Shown: piece by piece, positions 72 through 51,365 of the stretch | How the letters are laid out: each line of letters begins with the position of its first letter | How positions within the stretch are numbered: position 1 is the first letter of the stretch | Assembly (NCBI RefSeq): GCF_000143415.4 | Contig: NW_003314295.1 | Span: 248,001 to 312,000 of the forward strand | Length of the DNA stretch: 64,000 nt | Source of the DNA: Selaginella moellendorffii | Lineage: Eukaryota; Plantae; Lycopodiophyta | Direction: 5' to 3' | Position numbers and translations under genes: made by a program | Notes under the pieces: model-generated | What the model saw: only the letters and a program-made list of their open reading frames with translations | Told to the model about the DNA's origin: nothing | Databases searched by the model: none

Positions 72-3000
72 TTGACAGACTCGTCCACACTCAACTCGAC
101 ACAGACAGCTGTTGACACATTTCGCACCGAGATTCAACCAGGCGATTGTGACAATGATGTTCCGACAATTGACCTACGACTTGACAAACACCTTGTTCGA
201 GGAGCCATAATTGACGGTGGCTCCAGCATTAATATTATTGAAGAAAGTCTTGTTCAACAACTCAACATCGGCCCAGTGCACCCAGCACCTTTCAATGTCC
301 GAATGGCCGACCACCGATCTGTTCAACCCAAAGGCATCATCCAAAAAGTCAACACCACCATTCAAGGCATTGTAATACCAGTCAACTATGTCGTCCTCAA
401 ACTACTGGAGCAGACCGACAGATTCTCCTCGGTCGACCTTGGCTCCAAACTGCCCAAGTTTATCAAGATTGGCCCAATGACAATCTTATCCTTCGCGGAC
501 CAGACAGACCGACAACTGTGTCGACAAAAGCGACTAAATCACTGTCCAGCCACAACCGACCTATTGACTTGGAAGAATATAATCTCAAAGATGGCCTCGA
601 CGACTATCAAGAACAACAAATTCTCAAAGCCTACCCCGATCTTGAACCTTTGGCCGAGATCGACCTGTTTCGAATCATCGCAGACTTCCAACGAGAACGA
701 CCCCCGATTACATCAGCACTGAAAAATCCAGTCACTCGAGATACAAAACTCGAAGCGCCACTGGCATTCACAGTCGACAAGCACAACAAAGTTGCCTACA
801 TTCCATCCATTCCAGCCGACCAAAAACTCGAAAAAGTCAGCCTTGCCGACGACGGCAACGAACACTACATTGTACTCGCCACTGACATCTCGGCAAGTTT
901 TCGAGACAAAGGCATCAATCTTCTCCGAAAGAAGAAACACTTGTTCGCTTGGAGTTATCGAGACCTTAAGGGAGTTTCACCAAAACTCAGCCTTCACACC
1001 ATCACCCTTCTTCCAGACTCAAAACCAAGAAGACAAGCAGCCTACTGGATGAATCCGAATCTGATGGAACAAGTAAAGAAAGAACTCGACAAGCTTCTCC
1101 AAGTCGAGTACATCTACCCAATTCAGAATCCGATATGGCTTTCACCACTGGTGGTTGTGCCAAAGAAAAATGGCAAACTTCGAATCTGCGTCAACTATAA
1201 ACAGCTCAACGGCGCCACCGAAAAAGATGTCTTCCCGATACCATTTACCGACGAAGTTCTTGACGCAGTCGCCGGACATGAAATGTATTCCTTCCTCGAT
1301 GGTTTCTCCGGCTACAACCAAATTCACATCGCCGAAGAAGATCAGCACAAGACAGCATTCATCAGTCCATGGGGAGCCTATGCCTATCGACAAATGCCTT
1401 TTGGACTCTGCAACGCCCCATTCACCTTCCAAAGGCTTGTCACCAACACTTTCCGAGACTACCTCACTGACTTCATGAGAGTCTTCATGGACGACTTCAG
1501 CATTTTCAGCTCGGAAGATCGACATCTTGAATGCCTGGAGAAATGCCTCAACAAGTGCGAGGAGAACAACATAGCACTCAACCCCGACAAATGCGCTTTC
1601 TATGTCAAATCTGGAGTACTTCTCGGCCACATCTGCAAAGACGGCATTCTCATCGACAAGGACAAAGTTGACGTCATCTCCAAACTCGAACCGCCGAAGA
1701 ATCAGAAAGAACTTCGGTGCTTCCTCGGCAAAGTCGGATATCACCGACGATTCATCCACAAGTATGCTCACATCGCCAAACCACTCACCGATGGACTGAA
1801 ACAAGATGCCCAATGGACATGGACGTCCGAACAGCAACAAGCATTCGACAATCTCCGACTCAAACTAACAACAGCACCAATCCTTGCCAAACCCGACTGG
1901 ACACAAGAGTTCCACATTCATGTTGACACTTCCGACGTCGCCACTGGTGCAATTCTCAGCCAAACTCAACACGACAACCGAGATCAACCGATCTACTACG
2001 CCAGCTGACTACTCAACCCAGCTGAACGAAATTACACCACCACCGAGAAAGAAGCTCTTGGTATGATCTACTCACTTCAGAAGTTCCGACACTACATACT
2101 GTCAACCAAAGTCGTCCTTTTTGTCGACCACAAGGCACTCCTTTACCTCATCAACAAGCCGATACTATCTGGTCAAATATCAAGATGGTTCCTTTTACTA
2201 CAAGAATACAACTTCGAGATTGTCCACAAACCCGGCAAAAATCATGAGCAAGCAGACTATCTCAGCCGGATCACCACCGGCGACAAACCCGAAATACTTA
2301 CCGACAACTTACCCGACTCAAACCTATTCCGAGTTTCAATACCAGCAACCTGGCTCGATGACGTCTTCAGTTACCTCAACTCAGCAAAAGTTCCAGATCA
2401 GTACACTACGTCCGACCAAAAGAAGACTTTTGTTGCTAAAACCTGACGATACTCAATCATTGGAGGCACTCTCTACAAACTCGGAATTGACAACATTCTT
2501 CGCCGATGCATCAAGCAGCCAAACACAACTCAAATCATCAAGGAAGCTCATGATGGACCTTCCAGCAGACACTTTGCCGCTGACACCACCACTCGGAAGA
2601 TTCTTCAAGCCGGCCTCTGGTGGCCAACACTCTGGCACGACATTGAAGAATTCTGCAAACGCTGCGACACATGTCAAAGACACCGATTACCACCAAAAAC
2701 TTAGACTCAACAACTCAACCCAACATTCCCAATGGCACCATTTCAGAAATGGGGACTCGACTTTGTCAGACCCCAAGTCAGCACCCGTCGACGAAATCAG
2801 TACATCATCATCGCCACAGATTACACTACCAACTGGGCCGAAGCAATACCTCTCCGACATGCCACAGCGAAAGCAACAGCAACCTTCATCTATGAAAATA
2901 TCATCACTCGTTTCGGCACACCACTCAAACTCATCACTGACAGAGGCACCCACTTCATCAACGAAACAATCGAATATCTCGCCACCAAGTTCAAAATCCA

Positions 3001-3603
3001 ACACAAAACGTCAACACCATACTATCCTCAAGGCAACGGTCAAGCAGAAGCAACAAACAAAACACTGAAGACCATCCTCAAAAAAGTCATCAACGATTCC
3101 AGCAAAGACTGGGACGACAAACTTCTTGACGTACTTTGGGCCTATCGAACTGCGTATAAAGTCACCACCAACATGACGCCATTCAAACTCGCCTTCGGAA
3201 CAGAAGCCATCACGCCAATCGAATTCATCGTCCCAAGCATGCGAGTCACCGTCAAGTATAATCTCGACACCCGACATGCAGTTTGAGAAAGGCTTCAGCA
3301 ACTCGAACATCTCGACGAACTCTGACTCAATGCCCTCTGGACACTTCACGCCATCCAAAAACAGAGAAAAGCTCAGCACAACCGACAAGCATCCCGGCAT
3401 AACATTCCCAAATACAGCGTCGACGATCATGTTCTCTGGTACCGAGGACCCATTGGCAAACTTGGCCGAAACTCCACACCAACTAGCAAGGACCTTTCAA
3501 AATCATTGAACTATACCCCAATGGCACCGCCAAAGTCAGCACACTCGCTGAAGACTTCACTGAGATCGTCAACCTCAACAAGCTTCGACCATATCACGTC
3601 GAC
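72..3603 (+). pseudogene. Decayed pol polyprotein (protease, RT, RNase H, integrase)
   Basis: ORFs 518-2008, 2063-2446 and 2732-3286 share one frame and are separated by TGA stops. Frameshifts occur near 410 (ILLGRPWL lies in the RT frame) and near 3470 (just before the GPF motif). Confidence 0.92.
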
Positions 3604-15605: not shown

Positions 15606-17687
15606 TTACAATCTTTTCGTCATGTAGGGACCTTCTAGCTCATAGCCTAGTTTCCTGTAGTAGTGTCTAGTTCCCACTCCGGATATCACTGCCAGTTTCA
15701 CGGATCGATGCTCCTTGCGAGCTATCCTCTCGGCTTCTTCCATCAAAAGAGTTCCATACCCTGTACAAATTGGAAGTAGCTTGAGACAATAGGATAAAGA
15801 TGAAAACAAATAGACATGGTGTTGTAGCTTGTCGGCGTCACGGCCATGAACCGGCACCACAGTTCCATAAACGTGCAGCTCGCGAACTATCGAACATCTG
15901 TCCAGCAGATCGGGGCATGTAGCGTTGGGACCGCATTTTCTCATGCGCAGTAAACCCACCAGTATATCCTAGATGATCACTCTCAAGCAAGATAAGCATG
16001 ATATGCATGAGAAAGACTTTGAGAAAGCTTTAGGCAAAATACCTGTCTAGTGTCTTCATAGGCCAGAAACGTCTCCCAGCCTTTGTTAGCACAGTAGTCA
16101 CGCCTTACTAGCTCTACTTCTTCAGGCTTGATTTGATTGTGTATATCCTGCAAAAGAATCAGAATTATTAGTTGAATGTTACTTACTCGTAAGCATGTGA
16201 GCAAACCTGAATCCCAGCTTCTCTTGTCCTGACATCTCTACATTTCAAGCCCAAGTCCTCCATCCTCATCAACGCCAGCTCTCGCAGGTTTCCCTTCTCG
16301 ACGCCCGACGTTACAAGAGGCATGGGGATATCACGTTGTATGCGATAGACCCGAGTCCAGGGAGGTACCAGAGACAACACTCGAGGAAATTGACACCGGG
16401 ACGGGGAGGCGTTGTCCAGCAGCGGCTGAGCGAGGACGAGGCCAGGGTACGGGCAATTGCGGAGATTGTAGGGGCTATGGTGGAAGGACGCCGCAGCGGT
16501 GAGGACGTCGATCTCAATGCGCTTAAATCCGCTGCTTGCCGCCGCTACGGCCTTGCCCGAGCGCCAAAGCTCGTGGAGACGATCGCGGCGTTGCCAGAGA
16601 ATGAGCGCGATCTCGTCCTGCCCAGGCTCAAGGCCAAGCCTGTGCGCACTGCCTCTGGGATTGCCGTGGTTGCCGTCATGTCCAAGCCGCATCGGAACCC
16701 ACACATCGCCTATCTGTGTCTGCTGCCCGGGAGGCCCAGATTCGGACTTCGAATATAGCACACAGTCCTGGTATGAACCAACGAGCATGAGAGCAATTCG
16801 AGCAAGGTAAATTCTATAGTCTTTTTCATTTCTTTTTTTGCTAGCAAAAAAAAATTCAGGTACAATCCTTATATACAGCCATAGCGTGGATAAGGTGATC
16901 AAGTTTATGGATTCTCTTCTCTGTCACTGAGCAAAGGTGATCGCCACAGGTTGAATGTATCCTTATGGGAGGTACTTTCATGTCTTTGCCAGCAGAATAC
17001 CGCGACTATTTTATCCAAAATCTCCATGACGCTCTGTCTGGTCACACCTCTCGAGATGTGGAGGAAGCCGTGAGATACTCAGAGCATGCTGCCATCAAGT
17101 GCATTGGACTGACCATTGAGACGTAAGCCTTGCGTGGTTTCTTTCAATCACCTGGTTTCTTAATTTCGTTTTTCTCGCTGTTGCAGGCGTCCCGACTACT
17201 GTCTGTCTCCTCACTTGCGCCAGATGTTGTCTTATGGCTGTACGCGGCTTGAGATTGGGGTGCAGAGCACGTACGAAGATGTCGCTCGAGATACTAACCG
17301 GGGCCATACTGTTGCTGCTGTTGCCGACTGCTTTTGCCTTGCCAAGGACGCTGGCTTTAAGGTCCGATGGCATTTCCTACACGAACTTCTTTCGCTGATT
17401 ATGTATTTCAGGTGGTTGCTCATATGATGCCTAACCTTCGAAACGTTGATATGGAACGGGACATGGAAAGCTTCCGCGAGTTTTTTGAAAATCATTCCTT
17501 TCGAGCGGACGGCCTCAAAATCTATCGAACGCTGGTTATTCAAGGGACAGGTTTGTACGAGCTATGGAAGACTGGAAGGTTAGTGTATTTGCTGGTCTTT
17601 TCTCCGAGACAAAACTGATGTGCATCCTGATTGATACAGGTACAAGAACTATCCACCTGAACAACTCGTCAATCTCTCCACTGCCAT
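15606..17687 (-). pseudogene. ELP3: Elongator complex protein 3 pseudogene with internal inversion (16384-17675)
   Basis: C-terminal exons on the minus strand ([33 protein letters not shown]). N-terminal exons on the plus strand ([45 protein letters not shown]). The start ATG GCA GTG GAG remains on the minus strand at 17687-17676. Confidence 0.92.
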
Positions 17688-17696
17688 TTGCTGCTA

Positions 17697-17705
17697 AAAC
17701 CCTAA
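17697..17705 (+). promoter_or_regulatory. Telo-box (AAACCCTAA) just upstream of the ELP3 start codon
   Basis: Exact motif 10 bp from the ATG, with a second partial AACCCTAA at ~17712. Telo-boxes are typical of plant translation-related genes. Confidence 0.6.
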
Positions 17706-20229
17706 CCCAAGAACCCTAAAAGAAAAAGTTGAAATATATTTTTGACCAGCCATCGCTCCATTCTAGCCCTAAATTCAAACCTGTCTTTTTTTTTCCTTTA
17801 AAAATTAAGTTATTTTGAAATTTTTTTTAATCAGTTTTAACAAGTCCATTGCTATTTAAATTTTTGGTTTGCTTAAGTAAACGTTATAGTGGGACCCATT
17901 TTCATTCAACAAAGCCTCAAAGAAAACACACCTTTCTAGTCGTAATGTCTACCAAACACGCCACACGCTCAGAGTCTGCTCCCCACCTCTGAGGTATCAA
18001 TCTCCTTTCTCCCCAACCTCGCAAAACCCCTCCCTCAAGATGTCCCACCACGTCAGCCTGTTTGCCACGTGAACTATTCGCGATACAACCAAAAAATAGA
18101 AAAAGTTAGGGTTAGGGTTCGACAGTAAGGCTTTGCTAACGATTCGAACGGCGTTTACTTGTGTGTCCTCAACTCCTAGACTAATGTCACATGCATAACA
18201 TTGTGTAGTCATTTCCTCTTTTTCGAAGGAGAGACTTGAAAAAACATGGGTCTGATTGAGCGCTCTCTAGGACTTCTAACATTGCTGTCGAATATCAAAT
18301 TAGAGAATCGTAATTCTGTGGCTAACACTGTCCATGGCATTGCACTCTCTGTTTGCTGAGCCAAAATTGTCATCTTAGCTTGAGTTGGCTGATCTATTAC
18401 CAATAGGGCCCATCGTACCGTGAAGAACACTTCCTTCCTAGGATGCCTTGCACCACAACTTTGGCCATGACAGAATCTCCAACACCAAAGGGATGATCAT
18501 TGATTCTTTTTCTTGTAGTTCCTTGAATAACGAGCTTGTGCCTGTTCAATGTTTGCTCTTGCTCTTTCTTCCAAGATCGGCCTGTGATTCGAGCTTTCTC
18601 CAATGTAGTTCTGGGATTCAATACCATCATTGGTTGCGGTGAGATCTCGCTCAAAAGGTGAAAAACCTGTGGACTCGTGTCTTGTTGTTCTGTAAGCAAA
18701 GAGTACTTCCGGCAAAACATTGTCCCACTCCCCTTTCTTGAGCAAAATATTTACTGAGACCATCTTTTCTAGTGTCTTGTTTAAGCGCTCTACCATGCCA
18801 TTAGTTGAAGGTTTGAATCGTCCTGTCAGGGTGTGCTTCGCACCCATTCTGCAGCACAGTAGGGAGAATGCCTCACTGCAAAACTCTTTTCCCCTGTCAG
18901 TAAGGATCTCCTCTGGGACTCCATGTCTTAAGATAACATCCTCGTAGATAAACTCCACGGCAGTCTGAGTAGATTTGTCTTTTACTGCTCGTGCCTCAAC
19001 CTACTTAGAGAAGTAGTCCATGCAAACAACAATATATTTGTTGCCATGTCTGGAGGGGAAGTTGAAAGGTCCAACAAAATCAAGTCCCACCCTTGCAAAG
19101 GCCCTCCAATTGGCAACGGCTGTAATTCTGAGGTTATAGATGACCGCATAGGAGCATTAGAGATCTTGCAAGCCGTACATGAGGCTATCACCCGATCAAC
19201 ATCATTCCTCATACCAATCCACCAGTAATGCTGCTGTAAATCATCTAGGATCCTGTTCCGTGATAAATGTCCCGATAAAGAGGAAGCATGGTATCTAGCA
19301 CGAGCTCATCGACCTCATCCCGCTGAACTACCAACAGGTATTGATTCAGCTCTCTTGAAGCGATGTACATTAGCTTGCCATCTAGCACACCAAACTTATC
19401 TCTTCCTCGATTGAGTTTTCTCCTCACTGACTTGTCAATGCCAGGAACAATCTCTCCTGAGTCAGCAAAGGCCAAGCGCAGTTTGTATTCTTCGCGATCC
19501 ATCTGAAGTCCAAAGCAGGGATAACTACCTCAACCAACCCACACACTTAAATAATCAAGTCCAAATGGGGATGCTCACGCGGATGGAACTACAACCCAGA
19601 ACAGGAATGATAAATATTGCCACTATAGCAAGGAAATTCAACAAGTTTGTGAGACAGTCTAGCTGTGAAAGGCTCTGGATAACCCGTGAGCCTCTTTTGT
19701 AAACAATTTCATAGTCATATCCCATTAAGTAAATCGACCATCGCTGGAGACGACCTGAGAGTGATCCTGAGCCTTGAAGAGCCTTGAGCGCTTGGTGATC
19801 AGTTTCGATTTTGACTCGGGTGCCATGGACATAAGCACGGAAGTGTTTGAGTCCCTGTACTACAGCAAGACATTCCTTTTCCGAAATGGAGTAATTTTGC
19901 TCAGCTTTCTGCTATAATAAGCAATGGGATGTTCCGCATTGCCAATCTGTGCCAATATTGCTGATATGGCAAGTCTTGACGCATCGCACTGCAAAAGCTG
20001 CACAAGATGGATCAATACATTACCAGGCAACCACAATACCTGCAATCAGGATAAGATAATATAGGCTACTTGCACAGCTCCCGCTTTAGTTCTTCAAAGG
20101 CGTTCTGCTGCTTGGCACCCCAAGCCATCCGCTCCGACTGCTTTAGAAGCTTTGTCAGTGGCAAGGCCCTTTCTGCGATTTGTTGATAAATCTTCGATAA
20201 TAGCCAGCCAGACCAAGAAAGGCTTTAAT

Positions 20230-20278
20230 CTGCATCGAGACATTAGAGTTCCAAACACACGAAGGAGAACTCGTGTAC
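20230..20278 (-). other. 49-bp GT-AG intron at the RT thumb/connection region
   Basis: TAG|GTACACG...CTAAT...ATGCAG|ATT. Removing it gives FPIPEGKK*IKAFLGLAGYYRRFI, the canonical spacing with one CAG>TAG decay. A CTAAT branch-point motif is present. Confidence 0.8.
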
Positions 20279-20713
20279 CTACTTCTTTCCCTCAGGAATA
20301 GGAAACTCCTTCACTGCTGATATTTTCTCAGGATCCGGAGCAATTCCTTTGCCAGATACCACATGTCCAAGAAACTTAATTTCGCGCATGAAGAAGTGAC
20401 ATTTTTTTGGCTTAATCTTCAGACCTGCTGCTTTCAATCTATAAAATACCTTTCTGAGGTCTGTGATGTGGCTACATACTCCCCGAGAATAGACATTAAC
20501 GTCGTCTATATAGACAAGTGACGATTCCCATCTGAGCGTACCGAGGACACGGTCAATAAGTCTTTGAAAAGTAGCACTCGTGTTACATAGCCCAAAAGGC
20601 ATGCTTTTGAACTGGTACAAACCATCCCGGCATGTAAAAGCTGTCTTTTCCTTATCCTCTTCTCTCATAGGCACTTGCCAGAATCCAGAGGCTAGATCAA
20701 TTGAGGAAAACAC

Positions 20714-20762
20714 CTGCGTTACAACACATAAGTACCAGCATACCTCTCTCTCAGACATCTAC
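20714..20762 (-). other. 49-bp GT-AG intron within reverse transcriptase
   Basis: CAG|GTAGATGT...TAACGCAG|GTG. Removing it joins DQLAGAQ to VFSSIDLASGFWQV with the canonical RT spacing and repairs the frame. Confidence 0.85.
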
Positions 20763-22252
20763 CTGTGCACCAGCAAGCTGGTCGAGTGTATCATCTATTT
20801 GTGGTAGTGGATAAACATCACGCTTAGAAATGGAGTTCAACTTGCGATAATCAATGCAGAATCTGGTTGTGCCATCCTTCTTCTCGACGAGAACCACTGG
20901 CGATGCCCAGGGTGATGATGAAGGCTCAATTACGTCAGCATCTAACATTTTCTTAATCTCCTCGGAAACAATCTTCCACTGTTTGGGAGTTTCACGGTAT
21001 GCATGCTGCTTGATAGGCTTGCTTGAGGAAGTATGGATCTCATGATGAAGCATATCAGTTTTGGTCAAGAGTTCCAGTACTAAAAATCTCCTGATACTGC
21101 CACAGCAACTCATCAAATTCAGAAACGAGATCCGTACCTGAGAGCATATCTCCAACTTTTAGTTCTCCTTTTATCCTCCCAAGGAATTTTAGAGCCTCCT
21201 CATCTAGTGGCAGCTTTTCTGAAGACATACAGCTCACTCCCCCAACATAATTTTTGAATGGTTCTCGCAATCCAAGAGCATCCAGACCATAAACAGCTGT
21301 ATAGCACACAATGTCTGAGATATCTTCGCATGCTGCCTCGGCTATAGGATCACCCGACTTGACGTTCACCGTGGAGGTTGTCAAGTTTGCCATAAGGATG
21401 TCAGGCTTGTCCTTATATGCAGAACTAATTATTCCATTAGCTACTGACATGCCTCTCTAGAGTGCCTGATATGAGGACCACAAGTGATGAACGTTCCCTT
21501 GCAGCAACAAATAAAGAATTGTGTTGGGACAAATGCCTACATGTACTGGGCATGAATACATGCAGCATGGAACAAAACAAATTAAATCACAACCTGTGAC
21601 ATAGGAGGAATCGTAATGTCTGCGTCCGCTTTTAGTAGCACCACCTTTCGATCAACCAAAAATACTTTGTTTGCAATTGCCTCTGCAAAGAGCAACCACA
21701 GCTTGTGAGGCAACATCAATCTGGATGCCATGTTACCTTTGCATGGCTCCTTCCACAGATACATCCCTTGCTTGATTGGAGCAAATGTTTTAAACTCGGA
21801 AGTGCAACAAAAGGCTTTGTGTGAAGATTCAGGTTTAAGCAGACCCCCCAACTTCACAGGTCTGTGACCATTGGAGAAAGTGAGTTGCCTCTCCCTTATT
21901 TCAATCTTTGCACCTATAGCATCCATCCAATCAAGTCCCAATAGTGCTGCATTTGCACACGTGACTATACATGTCATCCTCACTGTTGTGTTCCCAACCT
22001 TCAAATCAAGGTTGACTAGACCTCAAGGTGTATATAGCTCATCATTGATCATGTGTATAAGTATGTGATGACAAGGGCATACCACCTTGGAGGCCTCTGT
22101 TACCCACTTTTCTAGCACTATTGTCTCATCATAGCTTGTGTCCACCATGGCCACCACTCTCTCAGAGAAATCTGAGTTCAACCATAGAGATAACAAATTG
22201 ATTTTCTTTTGGTCCACCATATCATGACCACAACAAAATTTTGTGATTGTAG

Positions 22253-22805
22253 TGTAAGCAATCAAAGAGAACAACTTAAGAGACAGTCCATAGGGTTCAA
22301 ATATAGAGGGAAAGGGCTCATGAATAAAAGTGCATCCCCTTTTTCAATGGGTCTTAGGATATTTGGGTTAAGCGTTCTAGGGTTTGAATAGTACTGGGTT
22401 GGGTGACCTCCCGGGAAATCCAAATTCAAGAGCTTACATTTGGTATCAGAGAAGTCTCGAGTCTGATTCTGTTGGTTAGTTTAGGGGAATCACATTTGAG
22501 ATTAACATTTGGCAAGTTTAGTTTGCTTCTGGCTGGGCTAGACTCGAGGGGTAGGGTGTTAAGAGAGCAAGGCTCTCGGGAGAGATGCAGCTCTCAACTT
22601 CCATTCACGAAGGCGTGAATTTGCAAAGAAGCATGATGGATTGTAAATAACTAAAGAGAACGGCTTGAGAGACGGTCTATAGGGTTTAAATATAAAGGGA
22701 AAGAGCCCATGAATAAAAGTGCAACCCCTTTTCCAATTAGTTAATTAAATGTCCTTAGGTTTAAATAATACTGGGTCCCAAAAAGTCCAAATTCAAAAGC
22801 TTATA
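22253..22805 (+). mobile_element. Cassandra TRIM (5S rRNA-derived LTRs), copy 1, nested in the Gypsy element
   Basis: LTRs 22253-22438 and 22642-22805, PBS TGGTATCAGAG at 22441 (tRNA-iMet), 5S-like TAGTACTGGGTTGGGTGACCTCCCGGGAA, and a 5-bp TSD TGTAG on both sides. Confidence 0.92.
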
Positions 22806-25099
22806 TGTAGAAAGAAGGGTAAAGTATCCATTATTTGCGTCTGACCCTTGCACAAGCGCAAGCTCTAATTTAAATTCTCTTCCGAAGACTTTGCTTTAAG
22901 GGCCTCAACTTACCAGTTCAGGTCATTGTATCACTTCTCTAGGTCAGCAATGTAGGTACAATCATGTTGAATGTGGCCCTCTTTCCCAGAAGTGTAACAA
23001 CCAATCCTTTTGCTAGGTCCCTTGTCCCTTTCCCCATCAGTAGGTGCCAACTGCTTGACACCACTACCTACCATGGAACCATTGGTATATCTGTTTTTTT
23101 GAGACCAGCTACCTCTCGAGAAAATCTCACCTCTTTTGGCATCATAGTAGTAGTCCTCTGGCTCTCCTGAGTCATCACTCTCTTGTATCTATGGCTGAGC
23201 AACACGTGTTGTAATTGCTTTGGGTTTCCACTTTTTTAATGCTTTTGCTGCCGCAGAAAGCAATTTGTCCATAGATCTCGTTTTTGCAGTGATCAGATAA
23301 GGCTGCAAATCCTCACGAAAGCCTCAATAAAAAGCTTGCTTCGCCATCCTTTCTACCTTTTCAATGTCATTAGAGATATATGTGGCAGCCCGTCATAGAA
23401 CAGCCCAATATTGCTGCACAATTTTGCCCTTTTGATAATTTCTTGTATTGATAAGTTCAAAGGCTCTATCCTCTAGATCCCCAATGATGAAGAGCCTCTT
23501 GGCCAAAGCTATGGCCTCATTCCATAATGTGTGATAAACATTCTTTGTGCCTCTCTTGAGAAAGCTATAGAGTGAATGCCTTGCATAGTGAGGGTATGTG
23601 CGGAAAAAGATAAAAATTGTGGCCCAAGAAATGATGGAATGGATGGAATGGAGGCCATATTATGGTGGATGATACAGAAGAGGACTATGTGTGATCTGAT
23701 GTCGCAATTGGAAGTAGTAGCTAATATTGGGATTTGATGTAGAGTGTAAGATGAAATGGCCAAATGCTGCTGGAAGCATGTGGAGTGAGAAAATTTGTTT
23801 GCTCCACTGATGAGTGGCTGGATGCTTGTTCTATGTAGGCCCAATTGATTGAAGAAAAGAGCTAGAATGTCTCTAGATTTACTGCAAGTCTCATACTGTG
23901 ATGGTTTAAATTGTATATTTTGTCTCTAACGTCCAAAAAATTTGATTTTTGTTGCATTATATTGTTGAAAGTCTTCTCAATAGAGTGATGTTGGAAGATC
24001 CTAAGTACCATGTATATATGGTGTGGAAATAATGAAAAACAGAGAGTCGGTATTTGTGATGATGGAATGCAATAATTATAAAAGTGAATAGAGTAATGAT
24101 TTGTGAATATAAATGAATGGGAATGAAGAGGAGAATGTGTTCCCAAAAGTGATAGAGACAAGAACCTGGGAACCAAGAGGAAAGGCCGGAAGATGAACAA
24201 GCTCCTAGACAAGTGGAGTTAAGGCCACCTTGAGGCTAGAATCTAAGCTTGAGCTTGTGTTGGCAAGAGGATATGGCCTAGAAGGACATGAGAAACAAGT
24301 GAAAACAAAGAAGAAATAAAAAGAAAGTTAAAAGCTCAAAGAGAGGAGAAAATTCACTGCTAGTGAAGAAGGTAAGTCAAGCTTTTCTTAAGTGTTGTTG
24401 TGAAGGAGCTCCCCTTTGGAGGGCAAAAGAAATCCTAGAGAAGGCCTTGGATTCCATAGAAAGTTAAGCTGAAGTTAGGCATGATGATCTAAAGCTTGTG
24501 GTGTCGAGAGAATTCGAGACCACAAGAGATATTGATATAAGACTTGGAGTATGGTGTCTAGTTGTGCTGGCTGCTCCTGGATGGAGAATGTTGATGCTGT
24601 TGAAGAGGAGAAACTCACACTAAGTGTTTGTAGAAGTCTAGTGGGCAAAAAAAGTGTTAATGCTTGGGAAAGCTACCACAAAATCGAATGAATTTTGTGG
24701 CTATGGTCGGGTTGGACCATTAGAATGAAAGAAATATAAAGAAGTATGAGATAAAAGGGAGAAGCTTTAAAATCACACTTGGTATTATTGCATTGCAACT
24801 AATTTATACCAAGGATGAAGTCAAAAGCTTGACTTAGCACCAATTTGAATTTCAAGCTTGAGATCTCCTACACCTACAGTTAAGTCAGCCTCATGCTATG
24901 TATATGCATGTGTATAGTTGTTGTCATAAAAATAAAAATTGGCTCTATAGCAAAATTGAACTATAGTTGACAGTGTGTGGCAATAGGTTGAGCAATAGAA
25001 GATAAACTTAAGCCTATAATAATCAATATGAAGAGAATAATAAAAAACCTTTTGTTATAAAAATGAGTTCAGAAAGTAAACATTGGATGAATTAGTGCT

Positions 25100-26048: not shown

Positions 26049-26625
26049 TGTAAGTAACTAAAGAGAACGACTTGAGATACTATCCATAGGGTTCAAATAT
26101 ACAAGGAAAGGGCCTATAAAAAAGAGTACACCCGTTTTTCCCATTGGTTAAGGGTTTTGGGATATTTAAGGTTAAGCATCTTTGCATTTGAGTAGTATTA
26201 GGTTGGGTGACCTCTCGAAAAGTCCAAATTCAAAATTTTATATTTAGTATTAGAGAGGTCTTGAGTCCAACTTTATTGGTTGGCTAAGGGAATTATACCA
26301 CATGTTGAGATTGATATCTGGTAGGTTCAATTTGCCTTCGACTGGGGTCGACCCGAGGGGTAGGGTGTTAAAAGAGCAAGGTTCTCAAGAGACCTACAAC
26401 TTTTATCTTCTGTTCACGAGAGCATGAACTTGTAGGAAAGCGTGATGGATTATAAGCAACCAAAAAGAATGATTAAAGAGATAATCCATAATGATTTAAA
26501 TATAAAGGGAAAAGGCCTATAAAAAAGAGTGCAAAGGTTTTGAGATATTTAGGATTAAGCATTTTTGAGTTTGAGTAGTACTAGGTTGGATGACCTCTCG
26601 AAAAGTCCAAATTTAGGAGCTTACA
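26049..26625 (+). mobile_element. Cassandra TRIM, copy 2 (older, heavily mutated)
   Basis: Two degenerate ~190-bp LTRs with the 5S-like box, a decayed PBS (TAGTATTAGAG), and an internal region homologous to copies 1 and 3. Confidence 0.88.
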
Positions 26626-30261: not shown

Positions 30262-32023
30262 TGTAAGCAACTACATTTTTCCATTCTACTTTAATCATTT
30301 AACCACACCTCCAACCACTTGAAGGAGTCTTATTCACAACCTCCATAAGTCCCACTCAGGACTTGGGGCTTGCTAGCCCCGAGAATGGCCACTCAACTTT
30401 TGCACTTAGTCCTAGTGCTCCACGTGACCGGTCCCATGACCAACACCCCAAGGCACCACCAACATACCAGCCTGTTACGCTAGGCTATGCCCAATCACCT
30501 TGGTCACATCGGTGGTCCCACACCTCCTGCATTGCAATCCCGTCTCTCCAAGACTGGGCCATCCGTCCATGAGTGGTCATCCCAAATCCACTCTTTAGCA
30601 TCCTTAGGATGCCCGCAGACATGGGGAATAACTTTCCCCAATATCTCCTTTCTGGTCCCCACCAAGTCCCTTTCTGTCCTTGGCCATGTTCGCTAACACT
30701 GCCACTGGATCAGGGCCCACAGGCCCGACCACTAAGTCCCACGGTCCTCTGGGACTTCCTCACTGCACGACTGTATCCTTGGTCACTACACCAGAGGACT
30801 ACTCTTCTTCCTTTCCACAGTCTGGGCCTTTGGGACAACATTTCGGAACACCGTGGCCTTACTCAAGCCTCGTGGGTACTCTCCCTGCCTTCCGCCTTTG
30901 GGTGCTCTAGCCATAGGCTTAGAGCGAGGTTCCGTTAAGCCACACCAGGTATCCAAGTAGGTAGTGCCACCCACACTTAGACTGGGAGCATCGGCCAGTC
31001 GATCTCCCGGGGGAACTAGAGCCGGCTCTTGAACACTTCACCAAGCTACCCCGCTTGTCGGTCCGTATTCACTCTAGTCTTGGACTTCCCAGTGGTCAGT
31101 TCATCACCCAACACTGGATCTAGCCTTCCTGGGCCAAACTGGCCTTTCTTGGCCAAACTGGCTCTACTATAGTCCTCCCCCTTACTATACTTTTGGAGCT
31201 CACCAAACCCCCTAGGGTCTGGGAGATGAACGCTTTGGGCTTTCACCCTCTCAGACTCAAACTCAAACTCGGACTCGGACTCGGACTCAGACTTGGACTC
31301 GGACTCAGACTCGGACTCGGACTTGGACTCAGACTCGAGCTTGCTCTCGGCCTCGGCCTCGGTCGCGGCCTCGGTCCTGGTCTCAGTCTCGGTCCCGGTC
31401 TCGGTCTTGGTCTCGGTCTCGGTCTCGGTCTCGGTCCCGGTCTCAGTCCCTGTCCCGGTCTCAGTCCCGGTCCCGGTCTCAGTCCCGGTCTCGGTCTCGA
31501 CCTCGGACTCCATCTCAGATTCCATCTTGGGTCCATCTCAGACTCCATCTCAGACTCCGTCTCGGACTCCATCTTGGGTCCATATCGGACTCCATCTTGG
31601 GTCCATATCGGACTCCATCTCGGATTCCATCTCGGGTCCATCTCGGACTCCATCTCGGACTCCGTCACGGACTCCATCTCGGACTCCGTCATGGACTCCA
31701 TTTCGGACTCTATCTTGGGTCCATCTTGGACTCCATTTCGAACTCCACCTCTGACTCCAACCCGGGTCCATCTTGGACTTCTTTCTCGGACACTTCCACG
31801 TGTCATGTGTTGGTCCTTTTGGGTCTCTTTTTGGAGCCTCGCTTATTGCTCGCTTCATGCTCGTTCTTTGAGCACTCCGTTGGGAGTTCCACTCCCGCTC
31901 TCAACCTTTCAAGTCGGAGCCTTTTAGTCCAAACGTGTTACGCTCGTTTGGCTTTTGCTTCGGCCACTACCACGTGGCACCCTTTCGGCTCCACTTTTGG
32001 GGCTTAGGGATTTGTGTCTCACA
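30262..32023 (-). mobile_element. Long LTR (family B), about 1.76 kb
   Basis: Minus strand starts TGTGAGA and ends GCTTACA, and is preceded by the PPT-like TATGGGTGGTGGAGT (32024-32038). Its end is homologous to 26750-26860. Confidence 0.72.
31255..31770 (-). repeat. Hexamer/12-mer tandem array (GAGTCC, GAGACC, GAGATG, GGACCC) inside the LTR
   Basis: Directly visible periodicity with successive sub-arrays. Confidence 0.92.
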
Positions 32024-40175: not shown

Positions 40176-41150
40176 TGTAATGCATGTGGTTTTGACCCTT
40201 TATCCTATGGTGATTTACCATAGGATAACACCAAAAAGCGGAACCTAAACCTTCTTTATGCCATATGACACATGCCAGACGCAGAACAAGGACAGACACA
40301 CAAGCAGGAGCTTCAGGTTGGTTAGCCATGCTCAACTTACCCACTATCCCTAATATACATTTGGAACCCCCCCGTAGCCCAACCACCCACCCCCCCTTAA
40401 GGAACACATGCTTTGGGCTTTCACCTTAAGCCTCCCTCAGTATCAGGAGTTAGTATCTGGGACAAACTTGAAACTGTAAGCAACCAAAGGGAACGACTTG
40501 AGAGACGGTCCATGGGGTTCAAATATAGAGGGAAAGGGCCCATGAATAAGAGTGCACCCCCTTTTCCAATTGGTTAAGGGTCTTGGGATAGTTGAAGTTA
40601 AGCGTCCTTGGGTTTGAATAGTACTGGGTTGGGTGACCTCTCGGGAAGTCTAAATTCAGGAGCTTACATTTGGTATCAGAGGGGTCTCGAGTCCGACTCT
40701 TTTGGTTGGCTAGGGGAATCACACCACATGGTCCGACTCTTTTGGTTGGCTAAGGGAATCACACCACATGTTGATTGACATCTGGTTGGTCCAGTTTGCT
40801 CCCGCTGGGCTTGACCCAAGGGGTAGGGTGTCAAGAGAGCGAGGCTCTCGAGAGAGCTGCGGCTCTCAGCTTCCGTTCACGAGGGCGTGAACTTGCAGGG
40901 AAGCGTGGTGGATTGTAAGCAACCAAAGGGAACGACTTGAGAGACGGTCTATGGGGTTTAAATATAGAGGGAAAGGGCTCATGAATAAGAGTGCACCCCC
41001 TTTTTCAATCGGTTAAGGGTCTTGGGATAGTTGGAGTTAAGCGTCCTTGGGTTTGAATAGTACTGGGTTGGGTGACCTCTCGGGAAGTCTAAATTCAGGA
41101 GCTTACAGAAATTTACTAAATATAAAATGACACTAGACATGGGACGAGTT
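40176..41150 (-). mobile_element. LTR fragment (related to families A/B) hosting Cassandra copy 3
   Basis: Minus strand ends ...CATTACA at 40176 and carries GGTGAAAGCCCAAAGC and GGGGTTCCAAATGTATATTAGGGATAGTG, as in the LTR at 6514. Confidence 0.6.
40475..41107 (+). mobile_element. Cassandra TRIM, copy 3 (best preserved)
   Basis: 194-bp LTRs 40475-40668 and 40914-41107 (TGT...ACA), PBS TGGTATCAGAG at 40671, purine-rich GGGAAGCGTGGTGGA before the 3' LTR, 5S A/C-box-like region 40596-40650, and TSD GAAAC/GAAAT. Confidence 0.95.

Positions 41151-49561: not shown

Positions 49562-51365
<1,804 letters not shown>

Follow-up and report, generated by a model that had tools for sequence, protein, structure and literature searches.

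The window analysed here, the whole stretch of DNA under study, comprises 64,000 nucleotides (nt) of the spikemoss Selaginella moellendorffii (contig NW_003314295.1, positions 248,001 to 312,000), and all coordinates below are positions within it. On its minus strand, at approximately 18.4-23.7 kb, a three-frame translation reveals a copy of a Ty3/gypsy long terminal repeat (LTR) retrotransposon, in which the domains follow one another in the order gag, protease, dUTPase-like segment, reverse transcriptase (RT), RNase H and integrase. The order protease-RT-RNase H-integrase is that of a Ty3/gypsy pol, and the copy is colinear with full-length Pol relatives. Within RT the coding sequence is divided by two inserts of 49 nt, here termed C and D, that are confirmed at the level of the DNA as exact and of intron type, while a third insert, B, is a probable intron. 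Together with three further candidates (A, E and F), they had been proposed from the letters alone, in what is referred to below as the sequence-only reading. The parts of the copy are listed from gag to integrase; a slash marks an exon border.

22934-23659, minus strand: gag remnant with three in-frame stops, from motif reading.
21737-22274, minus strand: protease region, from motif reading, in which DTS replaces D[T/S]G.
21736 to 21683, minus strand: candidate A, a GT-AG stretch of 54 nt in phase 1 that is open in frame.
21594-21682, minus strand: exon between A and B, the N-terminal part of the dUTPase-like segment.
21593 to 21537, minus strand: insert B, 57 nt, GT-AG, phase 0, with two stops inside.
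21058-21536, minus strand: remaining dUTPase-like segment and linker, with a weak Pfam dUTPase match and a match to E. coli Dut.
20763-21077, minus strand: RT N-terminal exon, ending in ...LAGAQ, from homologue alignments.
20762 to 20714, minus strand: insert C, 49 nt, CAG/GT...CAG/GT, phase 0, exact.
20279-20713, minus strand: RT core exon (VFSSIDL...YIDD...PEGKK, then TAG), from Pfam RVT_1.
20278 to 20230, minus strand: insert D, 49 nt, TAG/GT...CAG/AT, phase 0, exact.
20045-20229, minus strand: RT thumb/connection exon (IKAFLGLAGYYRRFI ... PILSYPD), from translation and relatives.
19998-20044, minus strand: site E, of 47 nt, against 5-7 residues in relatives.
19684-19997, minus strand: RNase H, from Pfam RT_RNaseH and RT_RNaseH_2.
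19683 to 19623, minus strand: candidate F, 61 nt, coding, in the region of an ADALSR-like motif.
18403-19502, minus strand: integrase (HHCC, core, GPY/F), with Pfam rve below cut-off, colinear with relatives.

Homologues show where C and D begin and end. At site C, 10 full-length Pol relatives stop at 20763 and restart at 20713 with consecutive residues, and the site is equally contiguous in relative L001, in 10 metagenome relatives and in an unrelated Gypsy element at 701-3232 of the window. At site D, a single codon separates the flanking aligned residues in L001 and in 8 metagenome relatives; this codon specifies a residue in the relatives and is TAG in the present copy, and the spacing from the P.P to the FLGL motif across D is 8 residues, equal to that of the relatives. 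Altogether, ~20 intron-free relatives cross C and D with zero residues gained or lost, which bears out the sequence-only reading that two 49-bp GT-AG inserts lie within RT and that their removal restores both frame and motif spacing. The alignments pin the boundaries to within a 2-nt slide, and no exon nucleotide is duplicated or missing at either site, so that transposon insertion or filler DNA is disfavoured. That the inserts are no more than small insertions picked up by a decaying pseudogene, with GT...AG ends arising by chance, might be suspected from the heavy decay of the copy, from the fact that GT and AG are common dinucleotides and from candidates A, E and F, which show good-looking signals without supporting evidence; yet two to three inserts have boundaries set by homologues and each matches GT...AG, a coincidence which by our own estimate has a chance of ~3/256 per insert and ~1e-4 for C and D jointly. 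An AG ahead of the donor, a branch-like motif, the length of host introns and exon nucleotides that are neither lost nor duplicated also stand against that explanation, which is regarded as improbable.

The inserts resemble host introns in several further respects. GT...AG ends are present in 6/6 candidates and an AG/GT donor in 5/6, as had been described. B, C and D measure 49-57 nt, compared with 64, 50 and 61 nt for three host introns in an adjacent fragment of ELP3, and the size match that had been claimed (49-57 against 50-64 nt) is upheld; a branch-like YTNAY motif is situated 17-20 nt ahead of the acceptor in all three, like in the host introns. The intron length distribution of Selaginella is short and fungus-like, sharply unlike that of other land plants (PMC6157073). 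Apart from an excess at site E, the remaining small length differences between the copy and its relatives are 1-nt indels, and the inserts of 49-57 nt therefore form a separate class. No intron-like insert was found in the integrase by alignment with the full-length Pol relatives. The Gypsy element at 701-3232, taken as a control, has a single uninterrupted pol frame, indicating that the method does not invent inserts. An introner, or the tandem duplication of an exon piece containing AGGT, might also have produced the inserts after the death of the element: C does carry CAG/GT at both ends, as predicted by duplication, but D is without a second AGGT, and the inserts resemble neither each other, nor their flanking exons, nor anything else in the 64 kb searched. 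Such an origin is considered very improbable.

Insert B lies in the dUTPase-like segment. The exon ends around it read ITIPPMSQ/AFVPT, compared with the contiguous VELAPGDT/TLVPT in E. coli Dut (L002), and taking out B restores the dUTPase spacing. The exon downstream of B aligns without gaps to residues 86-119 of E. coli Dut (motifs 3-4), while motif 1 is not recognisable. The gag-protease reading frame terminates at a stop within B (open reading frame (ORF) 21582-22004). On this sequence evidence B is a probable intron. The assignment of the segment to dUTPase is itself weak, with a match to Pfam dUTPase PF00692 at E=0.01, whose score of 16 bits falls short of the cut-off of 22, and one to human dUTPase chains at E ~1; a homologue search with the dUTPase-like part returned no candidate, and its two short exons gave no match among solved structures.

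The other candidates fared differently. Site E is situated between the YPD and DAS motifs, where the real excess over the relatives is ~26-32 nt. When all GT/GC-AG pairs were enumerated there, only GT-AG solutions of 26 or 35 nt kept both motifs in frame, and candidate E as originally drawn (20039 to 19998, 42 nt) was not confirmed as an intron, its removal yielding the wrong frame. Candidate F, the weaker intron of the sequence-only reading, is coding, as relatives align in frame through its first ~30-36 nt. The earlier count of five to six introns was accordingly too high, and the intron-like character held for C and D, with B a probable addition, but not for E or F. The features of a U2-type intron, GT...AG ends combined with colinearity on removal, were found in C and D, and probably also in B. 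From sequence, at least two U2-type GT-AG introns as long as those of the host would thus appear to lie in pol, namely C and D, with B as a probable third; they are best explained as having been present while the pol reading frame was still in use.

The profile search on which the RT and RNase H assignments rest, a check of the kind that the sequence-only reading had proposed, gave strong matches to both domains, as follows.

20713 to 20279, minus strand: RVT_1, Pfam E=1.3e-29, profile positions 69-204.
19997 to 19899, minus strand: RT_RNaseH_2, Pfam E=1.2e-08.
19911 to 19684, minus strand: RT_RNaseH, Pfam E=3.7e-21.
19000 to 18500, minus strand: rve, Pfam E=4e-07, below cut-off.

The protease region gave no match in the Pfam search, and the gag remnant gave zero Pfam matches at E<=0.01. 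In the gag-like frame the knuckle reads C-X2-S-X4-H-X4-C, in which the second Cys has been lost in comparison with CCHC.

Decay is distributed over the entire copy, which holds at least nine in-frame stops and ~7 frame breaks of 1 nt. Another stop, in addition to those located below, follows the GPY motif of the integrase.

23393-23395, 23324-23326 and 23189-23191, minus strand: gag stops.
22023-22025, minus strand: protease stop.
21457-21459, minus strand: stop in the dUTPase-like part.
20279-20281, minus strand: stop (TAG) directly before insert D.
20066-20068, minus strand: stop in the RT-RNase H connection.
19001-19003, minus strand: integrase stop.
Near 21486, 21082, 20177-20185, 19905, 19300, 19096 and 18560, minus strand: 1-nt frame breaks.
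22253-22805, plus strand: nested TRIM-like LTR element of 553 bp, between gag and protease.

The nested element has LTRs at 22253-22438 (186 bp) and 22642-22805 (164 bp) with an identity of 81.5%, a tRNA-iMet-type primer site-like sequence (TGGTATCAGAG) at 22441-22451 and a perfect target site duplication (TSD), TGTAG, at 22248-22252 and 22806-22810. Since these LTRs are only 81.5% identical, the Gypsy copy is taken to be older than the element nested in it. Judged from its sequence, the copy is an old, dead relic. Kin of the TRIM-like element are present at 40475-41107 and 26049-26625.

The assembly is backed by DNA run X1, in which a contig with only one mismatch extends across C, and no X1 contig joint skips any of the six candidates. 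The X1 depth of ~42 corresponds to a single locus, and sites C, D and E are at that depth, whereas the depth rises to 2-4 times the single-locus value over parts of the protease region, the dUTPase-like segment, the RT N-terminal region and the integrase. Elsewhere in the element there are X1 contigs that match it at 85-95% identity. Four of the frame breaks and two of the stops read differently in a part of the X1 contigs, at ~40% local depth. Comparison of 18400-22300 with part of the X1 contigs yielded ~100 substitutions and ~20 small indels, also at ~40% local depth, with a dense patch of differences at 22114-22148. These deviating contigs may stem from another haplotype or from a closely related paralogue. 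The single-locus depth at C, D and E leans toward a low copy number, with which domestication would be compatible.

Taking these observations together, we lean slightly toward the view that the copy is what remains of a Gypsy lineage that bore introns and in which spliced RNA was the sole source of Pol. Several points weigh against this view. Three RNA-seq runs labelled as this species, with ~9.2 million reads read from each, gave 0 reads on 18400-22300 at 85% likeness, which amounts to no test of splicing. No independent paralogue covering C, D or E is present in X1, and no sister copy was found in protein collections by RT and integrase protein searches or by an exact look-up of the RT ORF. 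A metagenome scan likewise produced relatives of 37-59% only and no sister copy. The codon preceding the donor of D is a stop in this copy. Candidate A stays a mere candidate, its region having no covering homologue among the fetched proteins and loci, and the excess at site E does not agree with the 42-nt intron that had been proposed. Finally, neither a repeat search nor local BLAST detected an LTR pair or direct repeat around the Gypsy copy, and neither a TSD nor a primer site of the copy was found; the absence of paired LTRs with a TSD may be read as loss in an old, rearranged copy.

The same absence of LTRs and TSD can be turned in favour of a different history, in which a stationary copy gained its introns in place, whether as a domesticated gag-pol gene or while trapped in a host transcription unit, and was later inactivated, the introns never having been retrotransposed. 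The depth of X1 over C, D and E corresponds to one locus, some of the breaks are not common to all X1 contigs, implying that part of the decay is recent, and the neighbourhood is rearranged, with an ELP3 fragment that has been split, inverted and partly duplicated. Such a history is nonetheless rather unlikely. The copy retains all retroelement domains in order, and we know of no domesticated plant gene that does so. An intact frame and expression would be expected of a domesticated gag-pol gene; what was found instead is at least nine stops and ~7 frame breaks, a nested TRIM-like element whose own LTRs have diverged to 81.5% identity, and no RNA in the three RNA-seq runs. The X1 contigs at 85-95% identity over other parts of the element suggest, moreover, that further copies exist.

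In the neighbourhood of the copy, the pseudo-copy of ELP3 next to it has been rearranged: the portion with ELP3_N and radical-SAM is on the plus strand at 16336-17700 and the GNAT tail on the minus strand at 15609-15959. By our reading its coding part has a frame break near 16730, and 17000-17675 is duplicated inversely at 50350-50839 with 92-98% identity. Telomere-like repeats (CCCTAA and TTAGGG units) in opposite orientation, ~400 bp apart, are situated at ~17698-17722 and 18107-18125, in the interval that separates the ELP3 fragment from the 3' end of the Gypsy copy. The second, unrelated Gypsy element, at 701-3232 on the plus strand, consists of a single uninterrupted RT-RNase H-integrase frame, matched in one high-scoring segment pair of ~780 residues, and may be a young or intact copy. 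Imperfect repeats of 6/12/18 nt (CTCGGA/CTCGGT units) make up a long array within a GC-rich block at 31226-31780; the array may be a low-complexity coding repeat.

With regard to its relatives, the RT of the copy is ~60% identical to the best of them, those with names being animal Gypsy Pol proteins of fish, sponge and tick. All of the relatives run on across C and D, and the dUTPase-like segment is present in none. The nearest relatives of the RT core also include environmental contigs about 5 kb long, in which ORFs of 1270-1490 residues are intact, and no plant relative is among the best matches of this core (20279-20713).

A literature search yielded no description of a Gypsy pol split by several introns, and the known systems differ from the present copy in one respect or another. 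As described in two reports that cite Steinbauerova et al. 2008, Ogre elements have a spliceosomal intron downstream of protease, the removal of which from part of the transcripts enables translation of the full polyprotein (PMC6317226, PMC4408406). Candidates A and B occupy the same position in the element as the intron of Ogre, which belongs to the Tat lineage of legumes. However, the single intron of Ogre is located in a non-coding spacer that parts its two ORFs, whereas several short inserts lie within catalytic domains here, and the RT relatives are of the animal Gypsy Pol type, unlike those of Tat/Ogre, as judged by best matches. In Ty1/copia elements and BARE, splicing balances Gag against Pol and separate RNA pools serve translation and copying (PMC5580714, PMC3735527). 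There, the unspliced RNA encodes the full polyprotein and splicing drops pol to give a gag-only RNA, whereas the arrangement here would be the reverse, with an unspliced RNA predicted to be unable to encode Pol. Penelope-like elements are retroelements known to retain spliceosomal introns (PMC4209133), but they form a separate class, in which the RT is telomerase-like, LTR/integrase machinery is lacking and copying proceeds by another mechanism. Fungal Gypsy elements that bear a dUTPase have this domain between protease and RT (PMC2864245); a text search of that report found no introns, and the dUTPase match of the present copy is below the Pfam cut-off.

From the exact inserts, their splice signals and the decay of the copy, all of which are read directly in the DNA, we infer splicing, its inheritance within a family and a Gag:Pol logic for the intron-bearing lineage that we favour. 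Translation of the unspliced RNA would end at the stop inside B, yielding Gag-protease. The same unspliced RNA would also serve as the template for reverse transcription, by which the introns would be retained in new copies. Only a fully spliced RNA would encode dUTPase-RT-RNase H-integrase. Splicing would then set the Gag:Pol ratio in the manner of Ogre, but with several introns located in catalytic domains. A broader proposal, which we put forward tentatively and hold somewhat short of probable, is that Gypsy lineages of spikemoss have several heritable spliceosomal introns in pol, that splicing replaces frameshifting or readthrough as their Gag:Pol switch and that spliced RNA is kept from the particles. 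Were pol introns heritable in this way, the present copy would be the fossil of a lineage with a dUTPase-like domain and animal-type RT relatives.

Elements that are copied through RNA are expected to lose introns, and reverse transcription of a spliced RNA yields a copy devoid of them. The copy described here is an independent, well-delimited structural example rather than a functional proof. If the proposal is true, the element would strictly separate the RNA that is translated from the RNA that is packaged, and the host spliceosome would be used to dose Pol. The single-intron case of Ogre would then be extended to a design with multiple introns, and the sorting of spliced from unspliced RNA by retroelements would become a directly testable question.

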